Source of the DNA: Blastocladiella emersonii ATCC 22665
Taxonomy: Eukaryota; Fungi; Blastocladiomycota
DNA length: 64,000 bases
Reading direction: 5' to 3'
Assembly (NCBI GenBank): GCA_025594325.1
Contig: JANHCV010000001.1
Location: forward strand, 248,001-312,000
Below the pieces are notes generated by a model, which was given only the letters and a program-made list of their open reading frames with translations, did not search any database and was not told the origin of the DNA. Shown here in pieces: positions 38,230 to 52,614 of this stretch (its first letter is position 1; the number at the start of each line of letters is the position of its first letter). The position numbers were made by a program, and so were the translations under genes.

Positions 38230-39520
38230 CATGTGATTATCTCTAGTGACAGAAAATCCTCAGCTGTAGCTTTAGCGAAGCTGAGTTTTTGTGGGAGCAA
38301 TTTGAAGCTATCAGGCACATCAACCTTCACGTGCACCTCAGCTTCCTTCGCAGTCCCGACGTCCGTCTCAACTCATAAGTACTGGCTTTCATTCGAGTCC
38401 CCGACTCCCCGCATTGGTCTTAACTCAGTGTAATATAAATTCAGACACTACCATTAAGAGACGGCGACCTGCTTGAAATTCTTCGAGTGTTCGGCAAGCT
38501 GGAGCGACGGTGGAGCGGTCAGTCGCTGCTGTCTCCCACTGCTGCGCCACCCGCTGAGCCACCCGCTGAGCCACCGCGCTCCGACCACGCCTGCATCTCC
38601 GTCGCCAACCACTACGACCGCTTCTAAACAACAGCCAGCGCGGCATCAATGTCGCACAAAAATCATGACGGAACAGCTGGCGCAAATTAACGGAGCTCTA
38701 TTTCCGTTGGTTTCCCAAACTGACTTCAATCTCTGACCGCCCGAATGGTCGAGCTTTGATCAGAGTATGCAGCCTTCGACTTTTCTCGTTGAGCACAAAA
38801 ATGGTGAGAGTTCGTGAATCGCCTGATTACCGAGGTAGCACAAGGTCATGGATCTCGGTCGCCGTTTGCAAGGTAATGGTTACATTGTCAGCGATGGCTA
38901 GCGTCTAAAAAACGAATAGGGAGGGACAGCGATGATGCGACGCACCGGTACATACTGAGTGGAGAATACTCGACATGCACGCGGCAAGGCGAGAACGACG
39001 GTGCGACGCGACCCTGGAACAAAGGTCTGAGACGTTGAGCACGGGGCCGAGGATTCATGATCACCACTGGATCACGCCGGTGAACCGACCCTAACCTGGC
39101 GACAAAGAAGAAGGTTCAGCAGCGTCAGGCGTGTACGCGTCCACTGTGTCGTACTGAAAGTAGTCGGCCGCAAAGCTCAACGATCCGATTGCTAAGCATG
39201 CGCGAGCGGAAGTCACTGGTGCTCGCGGCCCTGTAAATACCGCATCGTGCAGGTCGGCCTGAGCGACACCACCACGCCCGGGTTCCAGTAAGCGTACCTA
39301 TACCTCTCGTCCGCGTCCGAGGACCAAAAGCGGCTGCGCGATTTGGTCTCAGCCCAGCGTTTTGTTGACGAGGTCACAGGCGAGGCGCACATGCACATCG
39401 ACTTGGACCACAAGGACTTTTCCTGCCGCTCAACTTTGTCAACTAGCACGGATTCTCAGGCGACCAGAGCGACATGTTTGAGCCCAGCCTCAGTTTCAAC
39501 CATGGGCCACGGCTTCTAGT
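38230..39520. pseudogene. Decayed coding-like sequence, identity and strand unresolved
   Basis: Protein-like stretches interrupted by stops, e.g. minus VETDVGTAKEAEVHVKVDVPDSF and TLAIADNVTITLQTATEIHDLVLPR*SGD; plus KYRIVQVGLSD...FQ*AYLYLSS. Confidence 0.3.
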
Positions 39521-39969
39521 GCTCGCTCAACCGAATATCGTGATTCTCCGGGGCCATGACGCTCATGGCCGTGGCCGTGGCGGCGTCGGTCAAGGACGCG
39601 TGCCTGCCACGCGCGTTAGACCTGTGCTGCTGTTCTCATCATTGACATGACAGATTTGAGCTACAGCTGAGACCCAAGTGTGTGCGCAGCACACACACCT
39701 AGCGAAACTTGATCGCTTCAAGTTCGCCTTCGGCGCGCATGAGAGGTGCAAGACGCCTTTTGGAGCCCGCGAGGAGTTTTCAACTACGCGGTGGTCCAAG
39801 AGGATCAACGCGGCCCGTTTCAGGACTTGTTTTCCCGCGCGTGCGTCGCTCGACTCACCGCTGGCAGCAGACGAGCGCTTTTTCGTCCGCGCCTCAGTCG
39901 TGTCGAAGCACAGGTGGGTTGGGCGAATGCGGGGAAATTAGGATTCCTAACAAAACGCTCAGATTTCGC

Positions 39970-40051
39970 GGGTCAATGGCCGAGAGGTCTAAGGCGTCCC
40001 ACTCAAGCTGGGATCTCTTCGGAGGCGCAGGTTCGAACCCTGCTTGACTCA
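39970..40051 (+). tRNA. tRNA-Leu(CAA), intronless, long variable arm
   Basis: Acceptor stem GGGTCAA/TTGACTC; D arm TGGCCGAGAGGTCTAAGGC; anticodon arm TCCCA-CTCAAGC-TGGGA; T arm GCAGG-TTCGAAC-CCTGC; followed by TTTT. Confidence 0.95.
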
Positions 40052-41108: not shown

Positions 41109-43234
41109 CTACTGGGAAGCCTTTTCCCCACGGCCGCCCTTATCCTCTTTCGCAGCGGGCTCCTTTTCGACCACCTTCTTGGGCGCGGACCCACTCTGTA
41201 TCCGCTTCTTGGGCTCGGGGATCTTGCCACCGTGGAACTACTTGCTCAGCGGAGCCGTCTCGATGAGCGACTCGACGGCCTTCTTGATCCCCTCCGTCGG
41301 CCCAGTCGTTGTGGGCAGCCGCGACGTGACAACGCCCAAGACCGCGGCTTGCGCACTTGCGAGTAGGTCGCGCGTCACCGGGGTCTGCTTGCCCACAGCT
41401 GGCACAGCGTGAGGTTCTCGGTCCCAAGGCTGGTCACGGGCTCCGGATGCACAGTGGTTGTCAAGGCCGACTCTGCTGCAGTCGTCGCGTTACCCATGGC
41501 CGCTGGGCTCGCTGGCTGCAGCGGATGAATGAGACGAAGGAAGTCAATCTCAATTTGTGCCGCGGCGGCATCATCATCCTCGGTTTGGTTTGGCGAGGGC
41601 ACATCGCCGCCAAGCCCACTGTGAGGAATCTGACTCGTCAGCGGCATGAGAAGTTTGACTTTCGGGTGATGGATCTGGTAGACGACGGCGCGGGTGCGGA
41701 AGTCCTGCGAGCCTAGATGCAGCGCCACGGCCTTGCGCTCACTGAGAAACTCGCGCGGCGAGTTAATGAGCTCAGGCGTGATCTTGCACGCGTCGCCCCC
41801 AGATCACGCCGTCGGGATGCTCCGCCATGAAAGTGTTGATGCTGTCAGACAGGCGCCAATGCGTGCCGACGAGGAAGAACGCGCCAAAATACCCGCCGCA
41901 GGGGCTCGCCCGCAAAGACTCGACAACGTCCGCCAGGTCAAAGTTGGGCGCGAGCGTGTACGGCAGCGCAGCATTCGTTGTTGCAGGGGCAGCACAAGTA
42001 GTGGCGGAAGAATCAGCGGCGGCGAAAGGTGATGGAGCCGATGACGCCGAGTGACTCGCGCTCGTAAAAGTCCAAGGCCGAGTAAGGTCCGCTGGATCAC
42101 ACGAAAACTCGTACACGACACCAGCCAGAGTAATGTATCTGAGGCGCGTCTGTTGTTAGATAGGTTTCTGGTGCACACTCGCAGGAAGCTCATCCGTACC
42201 GAGTGAAACTTTCGTCATCGCCAGGAAACGGCGCCAGAAGATCGAGCTTGGTGTACGACGGGGGCGACTCGACAGGGCCAAACGCACCGTCGCCCAAAAG
42301 CCCCATGTCGTTGCCGTCGTCGTCGATCTCGGCGACAATGAGGTGCGGCACGTCGAGGCATGAGCGTTGGTCCACAAGTTCGCGAGGGCACCCGACTCCT
42401 GCAGCATGTCGTGGACAAACTGGACGACGGTCTTGCCCGACTGGCGGTGGAAGAGCAGCACGCCAAATTTGAACTTGCTGCCGCCGACCTGTTCAACAGG
42501 AACACCGTTTCGCGGGTCCTTGTCGGTCGTGAAGGTGAGAAGCGGGCGAGGAAGCGAGCGAAGCGTGAGGTCGCCGTTGGTAAGCTTGGGGATGGCCCAG
42601 GTGAGGTAACGCTTGTCGAGCTCGGAAAAGACCTCGAGAGCATCGGTCACAGAGAATCGTTCGATGTCTAGACAAGCCAGGGTACGAGGGTCAGTACAAG
42701 TCCCACGCGATGAAGAGAGGGCAGCGAATGCGCTGCGCAATGTCCCAAATGGGTAGGCGAGGGATGAATTCGACAAGCGAGCGTACCGTTGGAGATGATC
42801 GGAACGGAGCCGCAGCCCATGAGCAGCGGGATCAGCGCGTCAAAGTTGCGGTCGGTGAAGAGGGCGGCGGCGAAGCCGAGTCGGTTGACGACCAGCTCGA
42901 GCGTCTCGGGGCGTGCAGTGAAGGCGTCGCTGGCTCAGCGCAGCGGCGCGGCGCGGCCCTGCGTAGGATCGGTCACTCGCGTGTCGGCGACCAAGGGAAG
43001 CTTTAGCGAGGACAGCAGGCCAAAGTGCCACAGCCCGTCGGCCTGGTCAACGGGGTAGAGAATGGCCAACGCGAGGGCTGCGAGAAGGCAAGAGAATTTG
43101 ACAAGCTTGGGCTCGGTCCGCGAGCCGTTCGGCGCGACCGTGTACAGGTGAGTCCCGAGAGCGGGGCACTGCACGGGAGCCGCAATGGTCATGTGCACGG
43201 GCGGCTCGAGGTCGATGTGAGCCCAAGTCGCCAT
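41109..43234 (-). pseudogene. Multi-exon pseudogene of unknown family with a P-loop-like HRQSGKT motif
   Basis: ATG 43234 (MATWAHIDLEPP); stop at 42935; intron remnants (GTACG...TAG/CAG); frameshifts at ~42370, ~42150-42190, ~41798 and ~41420; stop at 41238. Segments include GVLLFHRQSGKTVVQFV, PHLIVAEIDD and EHPDGVIWG-DACKITPELI. Confidence 0.55.
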
Positions 43235-43481
43235 TTTGGCGGGCGAAGCGAGGAAACGGCGGGGCGACGATGGCACAGAAAATTGGAGGAAGTGACACCG
43301 TGGTACGGGTGCGTTACATGGACTTGCTTCATGCGGGCTTCCGAGGCGCGGGAGGAGAAGCGCTCGTGTGGCGGCGACAGCGGCGAGTCGACTGACGCGC
43401 ACCTCGCGAAAGCACGTCCTGAAACGGCACCGGGCTGGCGCCGCGGCGCGGTTCGGATGAACGACGCGTCGGTCGCGTCGG

Positions 43482-44224
43482 CTTCACGGTGCGTTGATCG
43501 CGGACCGGCCCGCATACAAGCAGCGGCGCAACGACCTTTCATTCGTATACTTGCACTTTTCACGCGGGTTTCTCGGCGCGTTGGCTCGGCATCACGTACT
43601 CGTGGTCGCAGAACGTGGCGACAGCATAACTGAAAGCGTTGACGTATGATTTAACCAGGACTTGCACCCCGAGCTTGCTGCAGCGACCCCAGCTCATGGC
43701 GCAGGACACCTTGACGGTTCGCCAATCTCGCTGTGCTCAATCCCAGTCGGGGCCCGGAGTACTCGCGCGCGCTACAACCATCGACGTGATCGCCGGCGGC
43801 GTCAGCATGATCCCGACGTTGGACCGTGCTATTTGCGACGATCCGCCGGCCTCGAGGCCTTGAAACGTCCGCCGACTAGCTGCGGATGGCGAGCTGACGT
43901 TTCTCGATCGTGACGAGCGCAAGGTCCTGACGAATACACTTTGCGTTTCCGTCGGACGGGCACTCACGATTTCACGAGCTCATGAGCCGCAAGCTTGTCC
44001 CGCTTCTCTGACGCGGATTCAGCGCGCGGGTCGAGTCGGGTCGAGACGTACGACGACGCAGCCATCGGATTGATTGCGCGACCCGCCGTTGCGCGACACT
44101 GCCAAGACGGACTTTCAAGGGATCAGGCAGGCTAGTGTCGGCCGGCCATGGTGCTCTCACTCTGGATCTGAACGACGAATGCGGGAGCAGTAGACGCGCT
44201 GTAGCCGTTGCTCGCACTGAATAA
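43482..44224 (+). pseudogene. Fragment (3' half) of a third SNF2-derived paralog, frameshifted and internally deleted
   Basis: Segments match copy B: GALIADRPAYKQRRNDLSFVYLHF..RHHVLVVA vs GLITDRPLPKQWGEDLSSVFLHF..RHRVLVVA; LMAQ/LKAQ; ICDDPP/IYDDPP; FLDRDERKV/LLDRDYRAV; FAFPS..MSRKLV/LAFPS..KSRKLV; LDLNDECG/LSLNDEGG. Confidence 0.7.
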
Positions 44225-44715
44225 TATGTGGGACTTTGCTAATTGACTGAGATGCGAGATATAGACGGGGGACAGTTTGGTCGAAATGACGGCGGAGCGA
44301 GTACTCGCGCGGGGCGCGGGGAGAACCCGAAAGGTCCTCGATTCCGATGGGACGCGTCCCGGCGCGCCGTCTGTTACGCATACGGGACATGGGCAACCTC
44401 CCTCAGCGAAGCAAGGTCGGGCGTTAGTGGATTGGCCTCCGCTGACGCTAGGCGTGTGCGGGCATGCCATGCATCTTCCCCCCTTTGAGTCCCCGGATCG
44501 AAACCCAACCCGCGACCGGAACAACTCAGACGGATGTAAAACCCTGCGAGGGAAGGGGAGCATGGCCTCTAGCGCACACAATTCGGAATTGGGCCGAGGC
44601 GGGGATGGGAGGGAGGGGGGGGACCGACAACAGAACAGAAGCCGGAAGCCGGAAACCAAGCACACAGGAACGGAATTCAAATACGAATTTGAATTTCGTT
44701 TTCGTTTTTGGGCTG

Positions 44716-44728
44716 ACGCGTTTTCGCG
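44716..44728 (-). promoter_or_regulatory. Composite CGCGAAAACGCGT element upstream of SNF2-derived copy A
   Basis: ACGCGTTTTCGCG on the plus strand. Confidence 0.35.
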
Positions 44729-44884
44729 TTTTGCGCGCAAACCCGCGCGTTCGACACGCGCACGTGGCCGGGCGCGCGTCTCAGTTTGGCCTGTGGCGGC
44801 GCCCGTTTCCCTTTCGGGGTCCCGCGCCGCTCTTCTCGCCCCTGCTGATACATCATCCCCCCTCGCATTGCACACCGACTCTAG

Positions 44885-47800
44885 CTAGATGCAACGGATG
44901 GACTCCATGGACCCGACGGCGCTGGGCGGCTTTGCGGCGACCCATCGCCGCCGCTGCTGCTTGCGATTGACCAGGTCCCTACTACTGCTGCCACCCAACA
45001 ACAGCTTCTCGATGTCGATCCCAACACGCCGCCGCCGCCGCCGCTCGACGCAGCCAACTTTGACCGCCGCGTCCTCGCCGAGCGCGTGGCGCGCGGGTGG
45101 TGGTGCCCGTTCCCGCACACGCCCGCGTCGCTGCTCGAGCAGCGCTGCAAGGACGGCGCCGAGGCCCGCAAGCTTCTCAACGAGTGCGCGCCGATCCGGA
45201 ACCTCGCCGACGAGGACGGCGTCGTGGCTTCCCTGTTGTTACACGACTCTTCGCAGCACACTCGCATTGCTTCCTCCGCCCAAGCCAATCCCGGCCCACC
45301 CTCGCCCGTCTCTCCTTTTGCCGCTTCTGCCGGTACGTCACGACACGCCCCTTCCATCTCTAGTAGCGTCAGACTGACCGACCTTCTCCTGCTGTAACGC
45401 CCCACCCCACCCCGCCCCGCCCCGCCCGGCAAAATCGGCCCGCGTCTAGTCGATCCCGCAACACCGCCACCGCCACCAGAGTACTACCACCTCGCCACGT
45501 ACCACGCCCTGCAGCAGCGCCGGCTCCCGCTGCACGGCCGTCTCGGCCTTGGAGTTCCCGGCATCGAGTTCCAAAACCAGACTGCGGCCGCCCTGGACTC
45601 GGACCCCGAGCCGCGCGCGAGCTACGTGCGGTTCAGCAGGGATCCCGCCGCCGCGCCCTTCTTCATGGTCGCGATCCGCGAGACCCCCGCGGCGGCAACG
45701 GCGCTGGCGGCCGCTGAGACGGTGGTGAAGCCGACCAAAAAGTGGAAGCGGCGCCGCTGGTACCACTACACGCTCGATTTCTACCTCGACGCGGATGCCG
45801 TCAACCACAGCCTGCGCGCCGGCGTCCCGGGAGCCGCTCGCGCCGTGCGCCGGCTGCTGCGGTCGCACCGCCCGATCCCGTCGCCGTCCATGCTCTCCAA
45901 GGTTGCTTCCGCCTCCCTATCTCCTCCGCTGCTCACGCTCTGGTGTCCGACTTGGTCTCCGGCGCCGCCGCAACCGCTGCCTTCGGGTCCCGCACTGCTC
46001 AACAGCAACAGCGGTAACACCATGCTCGTCACCTGGCTCGTGCATCTTGAAGCCGATCCGTACGTGCTCCCGGTCTCGCAGCAGCTCTCCACTCTCGTGA
46101 GACAGCCGCACTTGCGCATCGGCCCGCGCGGCGTGCTCTTCAACCTCGAAATTGGCGACTGGGCCGAGCACGACGTGTGGTCTACTTCTTACTCTCAGCC
46201 ACGGGTATCGTCACCGACAAGCTCCCGAGTCGTGCCAGTCGATGGCGAGGAAATACGCGCAGGCGCCATCTTCTCGCCGCTGTCCGAGGACCTCTTCCTG
46301 TCGATTGCGCAGCTGGCCCGCGTGCGTCCGGGCCGCCTCGACTCGGTCACGGCCACCGTCGCCTCCGCTTCCGCTTCTGACGCCTTCTTGGGTGACACGG
46401 CAGCCCGGCCGTCGTTGTACATTTCATCGCGGGCCACGCTGCTCGTGCTTCACTCGGCCGACGTGCCGAAATCGCTGCATCGCATGTTCGGACTTGGTTC
46501 AGCGAGCAGGATGCCTCGGCCCGTATCAGCGAGAAGGCTCGCAAGACCTCGTCCCATTACCATGGCGGCTGCTGCTGCTGCCATGTTAGCCGCTGCTTCG
46601 GCCGCGACGACGGGCGAAACTCCTGCTTCCTCGGATCCGTCGGCGCTTCGCATCGTCGCCATCTGGAGCATCGAAAAGTACCGCGCGACGACGTGGGACC
46701 AGATCCGCGACGCCGACCTCGTCCTCGTTGCGCCGGCCGTCATCATGCATCCCGACTACCGCGCCCACATTGCTTCGCTGGTCGGCGAGACCGAGTACCA
46801 CGGACCCGGCCCGTTTCGCGGCAGTCGTGGCGGGTCCGGCGAACCCGCGTCTTTGTCCACGGACATGTCGCTCGAGCAGTACGAGTTCTCGGAGCTGCTT
46901 GCTGAACGCGTCGCGGCTCTCAATGCGGCGGGCTCCGCGGCGTACGGGCCGACCCGGGGCGAGGTCATCTTCGAGCGCGTCTGGTTCCACCGCGTGTTCT
47001 TGCTCAACTCGCACGAGCGGACAGGGTCCGTGGCGGTCGACGCGTGGCGCGCCCGCGTGGCCGAGTACAATGCCCTCCTGTCGAAGCGCAGCCGCGCGGG
47101 CGAGCGCGGGCTCGCTCCCGCACTTGCCGAGCGGATCGGCGTGCTGCAGCCCAAGGTGACCTCGTACCAGCTGCTCTGCGGTCTCGCTGGAAGCTTCAAG
47201 TACGCCGTCGTGCTGCCGCCGCAGCAGAAGCAGCTGTCGGACGGGTTCGACTTCAAGGACTGGGTCGACTGCATGCCGGCCCGCGCGCTGCGTGCCCACC
47301 TGCAGCACCTCCCGCTCGGCGACGCGCTCCCGGACCTGCCGCACGCCGACTGGGTCGGGTTCATGCAGCGGGCCACGCGCATGACGACGACCACGACCGC
47401 GGCCGCCGCTGGTCCCGGTGAGGCGGCGGCGCCTTCCGCTTCCGCTTCTGCTGCTGTCGATCCGTTCGTAACGTCAGTGGTCGTCGCCGTGGTGCCGACG
47501 GTGGCCAAGCTTCTTCTCGCGCACGACCAGGCCGCGTGTCCGCTGCCGCAGCCTGTTCCTTTTCCGAATCGCTTTTCGACGATTTCCGCGGCATCATCTC
47601 AGTCCCCCTCCACCTCCTCGGGTACGACAGCTGGTCCAGTGCCTTTTCTCTCGCGGTACCGCCAACTGCGCGGTCTCATGCGCGGGTTGCAGCAGCACCC
47701 CCACCAGCTGATTGCTGCATCAGCTACCGCTCCCGCGGCCTCGGCCTCGCTTCGGTGCGCGTCGTGCGCGAGCGCGATCCATTTCTCGCAGGACGCGTTT

Positions 47801-48913
47801 TCCATCACGCCGTGCAACCACGTCTTTTGTTGCTCGTGCCCAGTGTTCTTCTCGGGCGCGGCTAGCAGTAGCGGGCCCGGGGCCAGTCGCGGCGGCGATC
47901 GCAGTACCTCCTCGGACCCGACTCGGGTCGCTACCGCCACCGTCGCCGGAGCGTGCGCCGCTTGTCGCCTGCCGATGGACCGTGACCTCGTCAGCCGCGC
48001 GAACTGCGTTTCGGCTCCACTCGACGACCTCCCGGTTTCGATACCCCCCTCCGCGTCCGTCACCGTCACCAGCACCGCACCGTCTCACCCGGCTGCAGCC
48101 GCCACGAGCAGCAGCGAGACGTTCTCGGCTCACCTCGCGTCCATCGGCGAGACCTTTCCAGCAGCACTTTCCACCTCGCTCGGATTTCCGCCGCTACCGC
48201 CACCTCCGCCCACCTTCTCGGCCTCGCAGTACGGCACCAAGCTCGCGGCGATCCTCGAGTACATTGTCCAGCAGCAGCGGCTGTACGAGCAACAGCAACC
48301 GCTGCGCGACCCTGCACCCGATCCAGCGACAGCAACAACTACGGCAGTCGCGGGCAAGCGTCGCCGTCTCTCGGTGGCGGACCATCGCCGAGGCCCGCGC
48401 ACCGTCGTGTGGACCCAGTTCCCGGACTTTGCCGCGCTGCTCGTCGCGGCCCTCGCCGAGCGCGGGATCCGTGCCATCGACGGGACCGCGGCGGGCCACC
48501 CGGCGGCCGCCGCCGCGTCCGAGGCCGCCTGCCGCGCGTTCGAGCGGCTCGATACGGCGACGGCAGCGTCGGTCATCTGCCTCAACCCCGAGACCTACCT
48601 CTACCGCTGCGCCGCCCTCGCCGTGAGCCACGTCGTGTTCGCCCACCCGCTGCTGGCCACGACCGAGACGGCCGCGCACGACCTCGAGATGCGCGTGCTC
48701 GCTGCTGTCGCCGCCCCGACCCCCGCCACGACCTCCGCCACGACCCCCGCTCCCGCTCCGGCACCCGCCGCCGCGGTGAGCCACCCCGAGCAGGCTACCG
48801 GTGGTGCTGGTGCCGACGAAGACCGCCGAGCCCGCGTCATCGTCGCGCGCTTCGTCGCCTCGGTCACGGTCGAGGTCGCGCTGACCGAGCGCCGGACGCG
48901 CGCCCTGTGGTAG
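44885..48913 (+). CDS. SNF2-derived pseudo-ATPase with RING finger, copy A (5' end uncertain; intron 45333-45449)
   Basis: SNF2-like order of motifs: ATLLV (Ia), ADLVLVAP, FERVWFHRVFLLNSHE (II), C3HC4 RING (47756-47965), YGTKLAAIL, TVVWTQFPDF..L...L...GI (IV), SHVVFAHPLL, RVIVARFVASVTVE. No in-frame ATG was found for the homologous N-terminal frame. Confidence 0.7.
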
Positions 48914-49181
48914 GAATCGGTCGCTCGTCACGACGATGACGATGAATACACTTTCATGAATGGGCCCTTCGATGACCTTCTAGCGCCTGTACATGCGCAC
49001 ACGGACTGATGGACAGGTAGCGTCAGCGGCAGGCAACTGACGGTCGACGCGATCGACATGACAGGAGAGGCGCCTCCCGTTCCCATTCGCTTCACATCGC
49101 CCTGACCCACCTCTGCCTTCGCGCAGCTAAACCCCATTTAACGAATGAAGTAACTTGATGCAAAATGCTTGATCTGCGACT

Positions 49182-52100
49182 ATGAATCCGCCCAGGAAGC
49201 GTGCCCGTGCAGCGCGCTTGCGCTCTGCGACCGCCGATGCGGAGCCCTTGTCTCGACCGCCGTCGACGCGTCGCCGCCACCACCGGCGATCGATCTCAAT
49301 TCTTCCGCGTATCGCGCTGCTTTGCTTCACGCCGAACGTACCGCGTGTGGTTGGTGGGTCCCCTTTACCGATGTCGCCACCCCAGGCGGTCCGCTCAGCA
49401 TGCTCGATTCGCTTGCGAGCACGAATTCGGTTGCCGAGTGGGTGGACAGCGTTGATACTCGTTTCGTTCAACCTGGTGCGTTTCTCCACCGCTCGCGAAC
49501 GCATCGGCCGAGGCAGACTCACTCAAAGGAACTCTCGAGTAGATTTGCTTCTGAGCTCCGAGGAGCTCGCCATCTCACGCCGGCCTCCTTTGCCCGAGGC
49601 TTCACTGGACGCAGAGACGGCGTGGCGCAACCCCGAGCGACCGGTCTTGGCCGATCTCTCGGCGCACCGCGAAATCGTGTGCATTCAGACGCGAAGCTAC
49701 CTGAGCGAGCGGTCCGTCCGCGAATGTGACTTTATCACGACGACCCCCGAGACCGCTCTCTATCGCTTTCCGTGCTCTGAGCGCGGGGAATTGGGTCGAC
49801 GGGCAAGCACTCGCCCGACTCCTTCGCGGAAGTCACCAGCGCCGACCCCGACTTTACGCGGTCGTATGTCCGCAAATACTCCTCGGCCGTGAATCACTGC
49901 ACAGCCACGGTAAATATGTGGTCCCTCGCTGGCGACGCCGTCTTCTCTGCATCCTGCCTGGAACCCGCGCGGACTGAATGGGACGTTCAGCCGTCCGCGC
50001 CAGGCATCCCGCCCGGCTCGCACAAGTTTTCGGCGCCGTGGGCGACCGCGGCCGGCACCGCGCTTCTTTCTGTGGAACAGTACACGTCGTCTCGCGCAAT
50101 CTACAGGATTGAGCCCAGCATGTTTCCGCTGCTCCGCGTTGTGGCCCGGCCGATTGTCGGCCAGCAGTACCCCAAGTTTGGCTTCCGCTTCACCTACGAG
50201 CTGGCCGTCTACCTGCGCATCGCCGAGGTTAACCGTCGCTTGTGCGACCCCGCCACGGCGCAGTCTACCCGCCAAGTCTTGCGCCAACTCTTCCGCCTAT
50301 ACCGCCCGCCGTTCACGCAATGGTTCTCTAATGACTCGCCGCGCATCCCGCTGATCGGTGACGTCGTTTACCACTGCGAAAAGGGCGTCCCTTCGCGGCC
50401 GTGGCAGAAGATTGCGCAGACCAACGGGCCCAAGCTCGGGTTGCGCAACTGGCTTCACACGCTCGAGACCAACGCCGAGGCGCGGACCTTCTCGCTTGCT
50501 GCCCGGGCACGCATCGAGCCGTGTATCCGCCTTGGCGCGCACGGCATGCTCTACAACTACATGAACGGCGAGTTTGCTCCTTCTTGCCCGCCGTTGTGGC
50601 TTCTACCGCTGCACCAGGACGAGACCCTCGAGATGCGCGCTGCCGTCGTGTGCGTCACGGAGCTCTCACCCGATTTGTGCCGCGACTCGCTTCCACTTGC
50701 GCCTCTTGATCCAGCCCTCGAAGTAGCGACTGCGACTTTGGTCCCTCAATCAACTGCGACGCTTATGCTCATGATCTCGGCCGACTCGGCCACCATGGCG
50801 CTTGATGCCGCGCGCCTCGAGCTTGGCCAGACCGCGCGCATCGTCGCTATCCGCAACGCTGGTGAGTACCGGTCGACATCGTGGGCAGCGGTCTTGAATG
50901 CCTATGTTGTCATTGTGTCGCGAGAGTTTCTCGCGAGCGACCACTACGCGCTTCCGCTGGGAGAGCGATGCTCGTCCAAATACGAGCTTCCGATCCCGCG
51001 GCTCGGCTTCCCAGCTTGGTTTTGGCAGAGGGAATCTTGCGACGCGCAGGTCGAGTTTGCCCACCGTCTTGTTGAGTATGCCCGCCAAAGTCAATCTAGC
51101 CCACACTCGTGCCAGGTTGCAATCGAGGCCATCCACTTCCGCCGCGTTGTCTTTGAGGACCCGAGCATCCTCCGCCGGCGGCCTAAATTCGATGGATCGA
51201 CCTCCAAGCTTATAGAGCGCAGTTGTACGCTTGTCCAAGGGCTTTACGCTGACTTTATGGTCGCCTTTGTCTTCCCGCGTATCCCGCTGTAGCGATCCAC
51301 TACTCCTTTGGGCTGATCACGGACCGGCCGCTTCCAAAGCAGTGGGGCGAAGACCTTTCCTCTGTGTTCTTGCACTTTGCGCGCAAACTGCCTGTTCGCC
51401 TGCCTCGACATCGCGTACTCGTTGTCGCGGATGCCACCAGCGGCGACACGGCGCCCATGGCCGAGCGCGAGTCGCACCATGCGCTGCGCTCGCACCTCGA
51501 GTCGCTGCAGGCGCCGCAGCTCAAGGCGCAGCTTACGCGTCTCGTCTCTCTCTTTGCGCTCGATCCCAATCGGTACCCGAGCTACTCGCGCGCGGCCATC
51601 GCCAAGATTGTCGCCGCGCACGATCCCAGCAGGGGACCGATATACGACGATCCTCCCGAGGACCTGGACGGCGAGGACTGCGAGCGCCCCTCGTCCGCGC
51701 TCTCGTTCGCGTCCGCGGTCTCGATGCTTGGCGAACCGCCGACTCGTGCGGTTTGGGCGTGGGCGGCGTCGCTAGGACTCGGCCTCGAGGGTGACCGCTT
51801 CGCCGCTCCCTCGGTGGGCGCCGGGACGGCCGACGGGGATCCTCGACCCGTGGGTTCCAAGCTGAGGCTTCTCGATCGCGACTACCGCGCGGTCCCGGCG
51901 ATTTCGCTTGCATTTCCATCGACGCGCGACCAGTTCAAGAGCCGCAAGCTCGTTCGCTTCTTCCACGCGGTCCAGCGCGCCGTCGAGGCGCACACGGTGC
52001 TCGGCGATGCCGCCGTCGAGGTGGATGCTGACCGCACCGTGTGGCCAGGCGATGACCTCGCTGTAGTTGCACACGACGACACCGCGGCGCGCCTCGCACG

Positions 52101-52614
52101 CGTCAAGGCGCGCTACGGCGCCAAGATCCACGCTATCGCTGCGACCGTCGCTGGCCTCGCGGGCGACAAGCGGCGCGCGCTCGTCGTGTGCCAGTCCCCG
52201 GTCCTCGCCGCGCTGATCGCCAAGGCCATCAACACGGTCCCCGACCTGCTCGCCGTCGACGCGTCGTCGCCCGACCCGCGCCTGCGCAACGCCGCTATCA
52301 CGGTCTTCCACGGGAACAAGCTGGTCACGGCCATGGTGCTCTCGCTCAACGACGAGGGCGGCGCGGCGTACGCGCCGCCGCCGCTCCCTGGCCAGATCTG
52401 TGGCGTCTCGCACGTCATCTTCGCGCACCCGCTGCTCGGCGAGACGGGGGCCGAGTAGGTCGCGATGGCAGAGCGCGTACTCGCGGTTCTTGACCCGTCG
52501 TCGCGGGCCTCGATCAAGCCGATGTGGGTCGTGGCCAAGGGCACAGTCGAGGAGAGCCTGATGCAGCCTTTCAAGGACCGCTTCGAGTTTGATGACGAAG
52601 TACTGTTCGATTGA
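49182..52614 (+). pseudogene. SNF2-derived pseudo-ATPase, copy B, no RING; two single-base frameshifts and an in-frame TAG at 52456-52458; introns 49476-49542 and 51225-51292
   Basis: Shares N-terminal AERxAxGWWxPF and DP...SYVR with copy A; RIVAI....Y..T.W, IHFRRVVFED, GAKIHAI..RALVVCQ, SHVIFAHPLL; after the TAG the frame continues AMAERVL...WVVAKGTVEE. Confidence 0.7.

Follow-up and report, generated by a model that had tools for sequence, protein, structure and literature searches.

A 64,000-nucleotide stretch of the Blastocladiella emersonii ATCC 22665 genome (contig C1:248001-312000; hereafter, the window) carries three same-strand members of a family of SNF2-RING proteins in which the ATPase residues are lost: an intact gene (copy A), a broken gene (copy B), and a short fragment (the relic). 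We consider it likely that they are part of a large expansion of such dead SNF2-RING genes, found so far only in B. emersonii, with copy A as a functional member, copy B as a recently inactivated gene, and the relic as debris. The ancestor would be a Blastocladiomycota SNF2-RING ATPase, which is the closest kin of DNMT5's SNF2-RING module. Duplication creates new genes and frameshifts and stop codons end them, and the intact members are under purifying selection. The proteins are predicted to be unable to hydrolyze ATP, so they would not translocate on DNA and may act as static DNA- or partner-binding scaffolds. The assembly searched comprises 32.7 Mb in 21 contigs; the published genome paper that matches it (PMC9730499) does not mention SNF2.

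SNF2 descent and loss of the catalytic residues

The SNF2 homology of the family was visible only through a family profile and bridging, active paralogues. At curated cut-offs, a Pfam scan of copies A and B gave no SNF2-rel_dom or Helicase_C match and only a weak RING match, and six further dead paralogues likewise gave neither SNF2-rel_dom nor Helicase_C. A single-sequence search of the PDB returned RNF25 as the sole match, and a word-based protein search with the copy A frame returned only four "hypothetical proteins," all from B. emersonii (copy A was queried as its long exon and as the public gene models). The profile A1, built solely from nine dead paralogues, matched DNMT5 of Cryptococcus (7r76, deposited as "Rad8") with an E value of 9.5e-17, in two separate significant stretches, one over lobe 1 and one over the RING and lobe 2, and matched Rad5 of Kluyveromyces lactis at 4e-10. 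Against 1.84 billion representative proteins, A1 found 3100 at E <= 0.001, and the matches examined outside B. emersonii were SNF2-RING-helicase proteins, including one of the DNMT5 type that carries a methyltransferase domain. The dead family has the two RecA-like lobes and the insertions specific to SNF2, and the copies in the window matched the family profile with E values of 1e-60 to 1e-173, far beyond chance.

Two genes of the same genome, at C3:721.7-725.7 kb and C11:900.3-905.1 kb, bridge the dead family to known SNF2 proteins. Both score for SNF2-rel_dom, RING, and Helicase_C, and in lobe 1 they share 39% identity with copy A. In a common alignment, GxGKT, DExH, L-T-G-S-P, and the glutamine and arginines of motif VI are intact in these two genes, whereas copy A and all its kin carry other residues in the same columns and have a P-loop three residues shorter. 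No dead member keeps the residues of motifs I, II, III, and VI that serve ATP binding and hydrolysis. Motif Ia, motif IV, and part of motif V, which contact nucleic acids in superfamily 2 (SF2) enzymes, are retained. In the predicted model of copy A, strand 212-216 runs directly into helix 221-233, with four residues between them.

The original prediction, made from the letters of the window, had read here three same-strand copies of SNF2 descent with dead ATPases, one with and one without a RING. We confirmed the copies at the places given in Table 1 and all of the motif strings quoted for them: no GKT, NSHE in copy A and EDPS in copy B at motif II, a motif VI without arginines, and H-V-x-F-A-H-P-L-L in both. 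The C3HC4 pattern occurs in copy A only. SNF2 descent is borne out by the A1 matches to DNMT5 and Rad5, a Foldseek match, and the two-lobe fold, and the loss of the ATPase by the absence of catalytic residues in columns where active relatives keep GxGKT, DExH, and Q..R..R. The predicted tandem array of three is present as well, although it is a small part of at least 33 dead loci in two subfamilies.

The dead members keep the SNF2 fold, have lost the catalytic residues, and are under purifying selection (with the reservations about its measure given below). In losing catalytic residues under continuing constraint, they may be likened to pseudoenzyme paralogues in general. Since every residue needed to burn ATP is lost, the family probably consists of non-catalytic scaffolds or regulators rather than enzymes. 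SNF2 proteins are viewed as motors that depend strictly on ATP, and no family of catalytically dead SNF2-RING proteins was described in the literature that we searched. Dozens of constrained dead members alongside active parents in one genome offer a natural experiment in the non-catalytic abilities of an SNF2 scaffold and a RING, and a clean case for the birth and death of pseudoenzyme families.

Family structure and relation to DNMT5 and Rad5

The profile search detected at least 33 dead loci in the genome, and copies A and B represent two subfamilies, with and without a RING. RING-bearing (type A) loci number at least 19 (eleven on C19, two on C20, four on C1, and two on C15), and RING-less (type B) loci at least 14 (on C1, C3, C6, C11, C16, C17, and C20); the relic is of the B type. 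Trees were quick LG+G4 trees, one larger and one smaller, in which copy B was entered as its matching pieces linked by X. All dead members form a single clade with a support of 100. In the larger tree this clade is sister to active Blastocladiella-plus-Catenaria genes (support, 96), and the smaller tree gives no resolved placement of it relative to Allomyces. Dead-type proteins with an established source are all from B. emersonii, the two matches from Blastocladiella britannica being of the active type, which agrees with the lineage specificity that had been predicted. Besides, among the Allomyces proteins P0020, P0026, and P0018 there is an independently degenerate pair, which lacks the ATPase motifs and also the hydrophobic residue in its first RING loop; one gene of the pair, GGF32_001847, adjoins an active copy, GGF32_001848.

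The active relatives comprise H9P43_008249 and the C11 gene of B. emersonii, KAI9223507 of B. britannica, ORZ37087 of Catenaria, KAJ3358702 of Allomyces, and others. These Blastocladiomycota paralogues, which form either the sister group or the parent lineage of the dead clade, have the same N-terminal domain, the same layout of lobes and RING, and the 39% identity in lobe 1 noted above. They differ from the dead genes in keeping GxGKT, DExH, a motif III of T-G-S/T-P, the motif VI glutamine and arginines, and a C-P-I/V-C RING loop, and they occur in one or two copies per genome with a GC content at third codon positions (GC3) of 0.93 to 0.95.

Among known systems, the SNF2-RING module of DNMT5 from Cryptococcus neoformans (PDB 7r76-7r78 and 7t02) is the best PDB match in both sequence and structure. 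Rad5, HLTF, and Rad16 share the order of N-terminal domain, lobe 1, RING, and lobe 2, as well as the beta-hairpin segment preceding motif I, and K. lactis Rad5 gave a Foldseek E value of 6e-11. Copy A resembles the Rad5/16-like group in its C3HC4 RING between the lobes, but the DPWWNP that follows motif V in that group is replaced by an H-P-L-L-type block. Indeed, among the 148 nearest representatives the H-P-hydrophobic-hydrophobic block occurs in 76 and DPxWNP in one. The genome's own Rad5/16-type gene, with DPWWNP and a RING, was included in the tree, and the blastoclad clade joined, with a support of 100, a clade that holds the DNMT5-type protein (methyltransferase, SNF2, and chromo domains) and excludes the Rad5/16 type. 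The predicted position nearer to DNMT5 than to DPWWNP-type Rad5 is thus upheld by both the tree and the motif counts.

A DNMT5 fusion was considered and rejected. The methyltransferase domain (PF00145) is absent from copy A, copy B, and the active paralogues, and the N-terminal domain of DNMT5 differs from theirs. The genome has four C5 cytosine methyltransferase loci (C1:1469 kb, C1:2684 kb, C18:932 kb, and C21:1010 kb), none of which adjoins an SNF2 locus, and no DNMT5-type fusion of methyltransferase and SNF2 was found in it. It follows from the tree and these unlinked loci that the parent lineage is a DNMT5-related motor without a methyltransferase. It is present in Blastocladiella, Catenaria, and Allomyces, showing that the DNMT5-like motor occurs on its own, with no methyltransferase, throughout the Blastocladiomycota. 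DNMT5 itself requires ATP hydrolysis, as stated in PMC7862722 in a passage citing Dumesic 2020, whereas the dead genes are without any of the ATPase residues.

The eight RING zinc ligands are invariant in the nine type A paralogues, and in the predicted model of copy A the RING has a predicted local distance difference test (pLDDT) score of about 90. The hydrophobic position of the first RING loop is the main contact to the ubiquitin-conjugating enzyme (E2) in BRCA1, c-Cbl, and CNOT4. This loop reads C-P-[I/V/L]-C in nearly all of 14 active sequences and C-x-[I/V/L]-C in all 14, whereas the position is occupied by Ser, Cys, Arg, or Gln in all dead members; it is likewise small or polar in the degenerate Allomyces pair. 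Loss of this E2-contact residue suggests that the RING serves as a structural or pairing module rather than as an autonomous ligase, and the dead proteins are probably not self-sufficient ubiquitin ligases. In the original prediction they had been proposed as chromatin or ubiquitin adaptors; a role as ubiquitin ligases is doubtful. By analogy, they may be compared with BARD1, BMI1, and MDMX, inactive RING partners of heterodimeric ubiquitin ligases (E3), which keep the zinc-binding RING fold and have lost E2-contact features.

Upstream of the helicase core lies a domain of about 250 residues that is common to the dead and active proteins and to those of Catenaria, Allomyces, and B. britannica; about 150 positions are missing from its middle in the copy A subfamily. 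Its fold is predicted with confidence (pLDDT, 80 to 93), and it gave no Pfam match and no significant structural match. The shared N-terminal module of the original prediction therefore stands as one without an assignment, but not as a peculiarity of the dead genes, since the domain occurs in active relatives of three genera. The short WW.PF motif, likewise without an assignment, was found outside the dead members only in the active C3 protein.

Constraint, turnover, and alternative explanations

At least 10 members, about 30% identical to one another, have open frames of 1000 to 1380 codons. The eight RING ligands and about 70 further columns are invariant, among them columns in motif Ia, in motif IV, in the H-V-x-F-A-H-P block, and in an L-E-M that is peculiar to the family at motif VI. 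The codon-model ratio of nonsynonymous to synonymous substitution rates (omega) was 0.22 over 560 gap-free codons of nine type A genes, and pairwise Nei-Gojobori values were 0.22 to 0.51. The long open frames and this omega argue against neutral decay, and for the intact members we reject neutral decay on the invariant columns and the omega value. The birth and death foreseen in the original prediction are seen in inverted duplicates, frameshifts, and stops.

It is very unlikely that the whole family is a graveyard of functionless, neutrally decaying pseudogenes whose frames are open only because GC-rich DNA has few stops. Frameshifts or stops do occur in copy B, in the relic, and at several loci on C19, C1, and C3, codon bias is below that of core genes, and the genes sit in low-GC, repeat-bearing regions. 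However, about 2% of random codons would be stops at 65 to 70% GC, a rate at which chance would not be expected to leave 1100 codons open, and yet at least 10 such frames survive, with the low omega and the invariant columns described above. Extremely improbable, in our judgment, is that the proteins are still ATPases or remodelers working through non-canonical residues. The fold and motifs Ia and IV are kept, and a few members have acidic residues near motif II, but the P-loop is shortened with no Gly-Lys-Thr in any member, the DExx box is absent, the motif VI glutamine and both arginines are replaced, and strand 1 and helix 1 are just four residues apart in the model. We also regard as unlikely that the genes travel as cargo in, or form part of, a mobile or selfish element, or belong to an allorecognition or genome-defense arms race, such that copy number and turnover reflect conflict and not housekeeping regulation. 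The clustering of copies within about 100 to 450 kb of contig ends, their place in a low-GC island that holds a dispersed 1.4-kb repeat and a tRNA gene, the near-identical inverted duplicates seen in two instances, the fast turnover within a single species, and the parallel dead pair in Allomyces would all fit this reading. On the other hand, no transposase, integrase, or reverse transcriptase adjoins the copies examined, the 6.9-kb unit that is duplicated around copy A has no near-identical copies elsewhere beyond a single inverted duplicate, and a pairing with DUF4470 genes is not general.

Several points weigh against the preferred reading of the family as constrained, non-catalytic scaffolds. 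The omega of 0.22 was taken from gap-free, hence conserved, columns, and codon bias compresses synonymous divergence (dS), as the active pair, with its GC3 of 0.93 to 0.95, gives 0.93. The GC3 of the dead family is 0.61 to 0.81, against the higher values of the active paralogues, which fits weak expression, and one or two stops in several family loci indicate that part of the family is already dead as genes. Retained DNA binding would follow from motif conservation, and the loss of E2 binding from a single well-known contact position. The family is known here from gene sequences and predicted structures. Rather than self-sufficient ligases, the dead proteins would more likely be partners, modulators, or decoys of the active C3 and C11 paralogues or of their targets, although a partnership with these paralogues is speculation. 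A more far-reaching version, which we hold to be possible though doubtful, is a radiation of more than 30 doubly dead SNF2-RING pseudoenzymes (no ATPase and no E2 contact) that had a single origin in Blastocladiella and a parallel one in Allomyces. These would serve a DNMT5-related chromatin motor as regulators or decoys that can stand in for one another, an arms-race family in chromatin or genome defense whose N-terminal fold would be one not yet described.

Gene structures and surroundings in the window

Table 1. Features of the dead SNF2-RING genes and their duplicated segment (positions in the window)
Feature	Position	Strand	Remarks
Relic, decayed fragment of a type B member	43494..43771	+	Detected in a tblastn search that used the middle part of copy B
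Copy A, intact type A gene	44907..48913	+	Public model H9P43_000142; identical twin H9P43_000161
Predicted short 5' introns of copy A	~44937-45004 and ~45329-45448	+	One long exon after them
Short N-terminal motif AER..WW.PF of copy A	45077..45130, approximate	+	Shared by dead members of several subfamilies and by the active C3 paralogue P0011
Uninterrupted exon of copy A, 1095 codons	45626..48913	+	Truncated N-terminal domain, SNF2 lobe 1, RING, SNF2 lobe 2
Motif I (Walker A) position of copy A	46262..46297	+	Loop three residues shorter than in active relatives; GKT absent
Motif Ia of copy A, kept	46427..46441	+	S268, A270, T271, and L272 invariant across the dead family
Motif II position of copy A	47006..47017	+	NSHE in place of DExH of active relatives
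C3HC4 RING of copy A, between the lobes	47756..47965	+	Exon residues 711-780; 8/8 zinc ligands kept; first-loop hydrophobic residue replaced by serine
Motif IV of copy A, kept	48401..48421	+	V928, T930, and Q931 invariant
H-V-x-F-A-H-P-L-L block of copy A (replaces DPWWNP), then motif VI position	48629..48703	+	Motif VI glutamine and both arginines lost
Copy B, RING-less type B gene, broken	49169..52614	+	Frame changes, diverged middle, in-frame TAG
Duplicated segment with relic and copy A, copy B excluded	42066..48962		Second copy inverted, 99-100% identical, C1:396713-403605

The upstream exons of copy A, including the short AER..WW.PF motif, lie at about 44907-45328 in the same frame as the long exon. 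One stop codon occurs in the upstream stretch, and the stretch that bears it is taken as the second intron because the paralogue P0003 is without it. Both public models of copy A and its twin excise two "introns" within the 1095-codon open exon, which include the invariant motif Ia and most of the RING, and for this reason the models look mis-spliced; the exon described here corrects them.

Copy B consists of four collinear pieces in three frames that match the profile (49530-49772, 49817-51160, 52075-52449, and 52477-52566), with one frame change near 49500 and another between positions 49730 and 49805. A related gene on C16 has a single continuous open frame at the latter place, so the change there is a frameshift and not an intron. 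An in-frame TAG at 52456-52458 stands between conserved blocks, and the conserved sequence resumes in frame beyond it. Copy B and its subfamily have no RING, and its nearest kin are P0027 (40%), P0021 (38%), and the C16 open frame (36%). The relic resembles the middle part of copy B, a region specific to the RING-less subfamily, in two frames, at 57% identity across 40 residues and 52% across 19 (E value, 2e-9). A longer weak alignment extends to about 44018 at 27% identity with 3 stops.

The inverted copy of the segment around copy A lies about 100 kb away, and a large palindrome was rejected, as the identical inverted copy spans only 6.9 kb. Within the segment, positions 42393-43192 (minus strand) largely match the first 199 codons of H9P43_000162 (100% over residues 109-199 and 75% over 1-108); at the other locus the type B body of this gene falls beyond the duplicated unit, and the window has only the 5' part. 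A second near-identical inverted duplicate with a type A gene occurs at C15:364.5-368.1 kb and 395.2-398.7 kb, 30 kb apart. Both duplicates could be real recent duplications, gene conversion, or a haplotype-purging residue of the assembly.

DUF4470 (PF14737) has at least 150 scattered loci genome-wide, some of them among the dead clusters of C19 and C20. There are none in C1 248-450 kb, around the window, and a specific link to the dead family was rejected as a general one. The low-GC island has a GC content of 55 to 58%, against about 70% in the flanks, and a Pfam scan of seven other open reading frames in it gave no matches. A repeat of about 1.4 kb at 38256-39700, inside the island, is dispersed in some 40 copies over many contigs at 75 to 84% identity and looks like a transposable element, and a tRNA-Leu (CAA) gene lies at 39970-40051, in the middle of the island.

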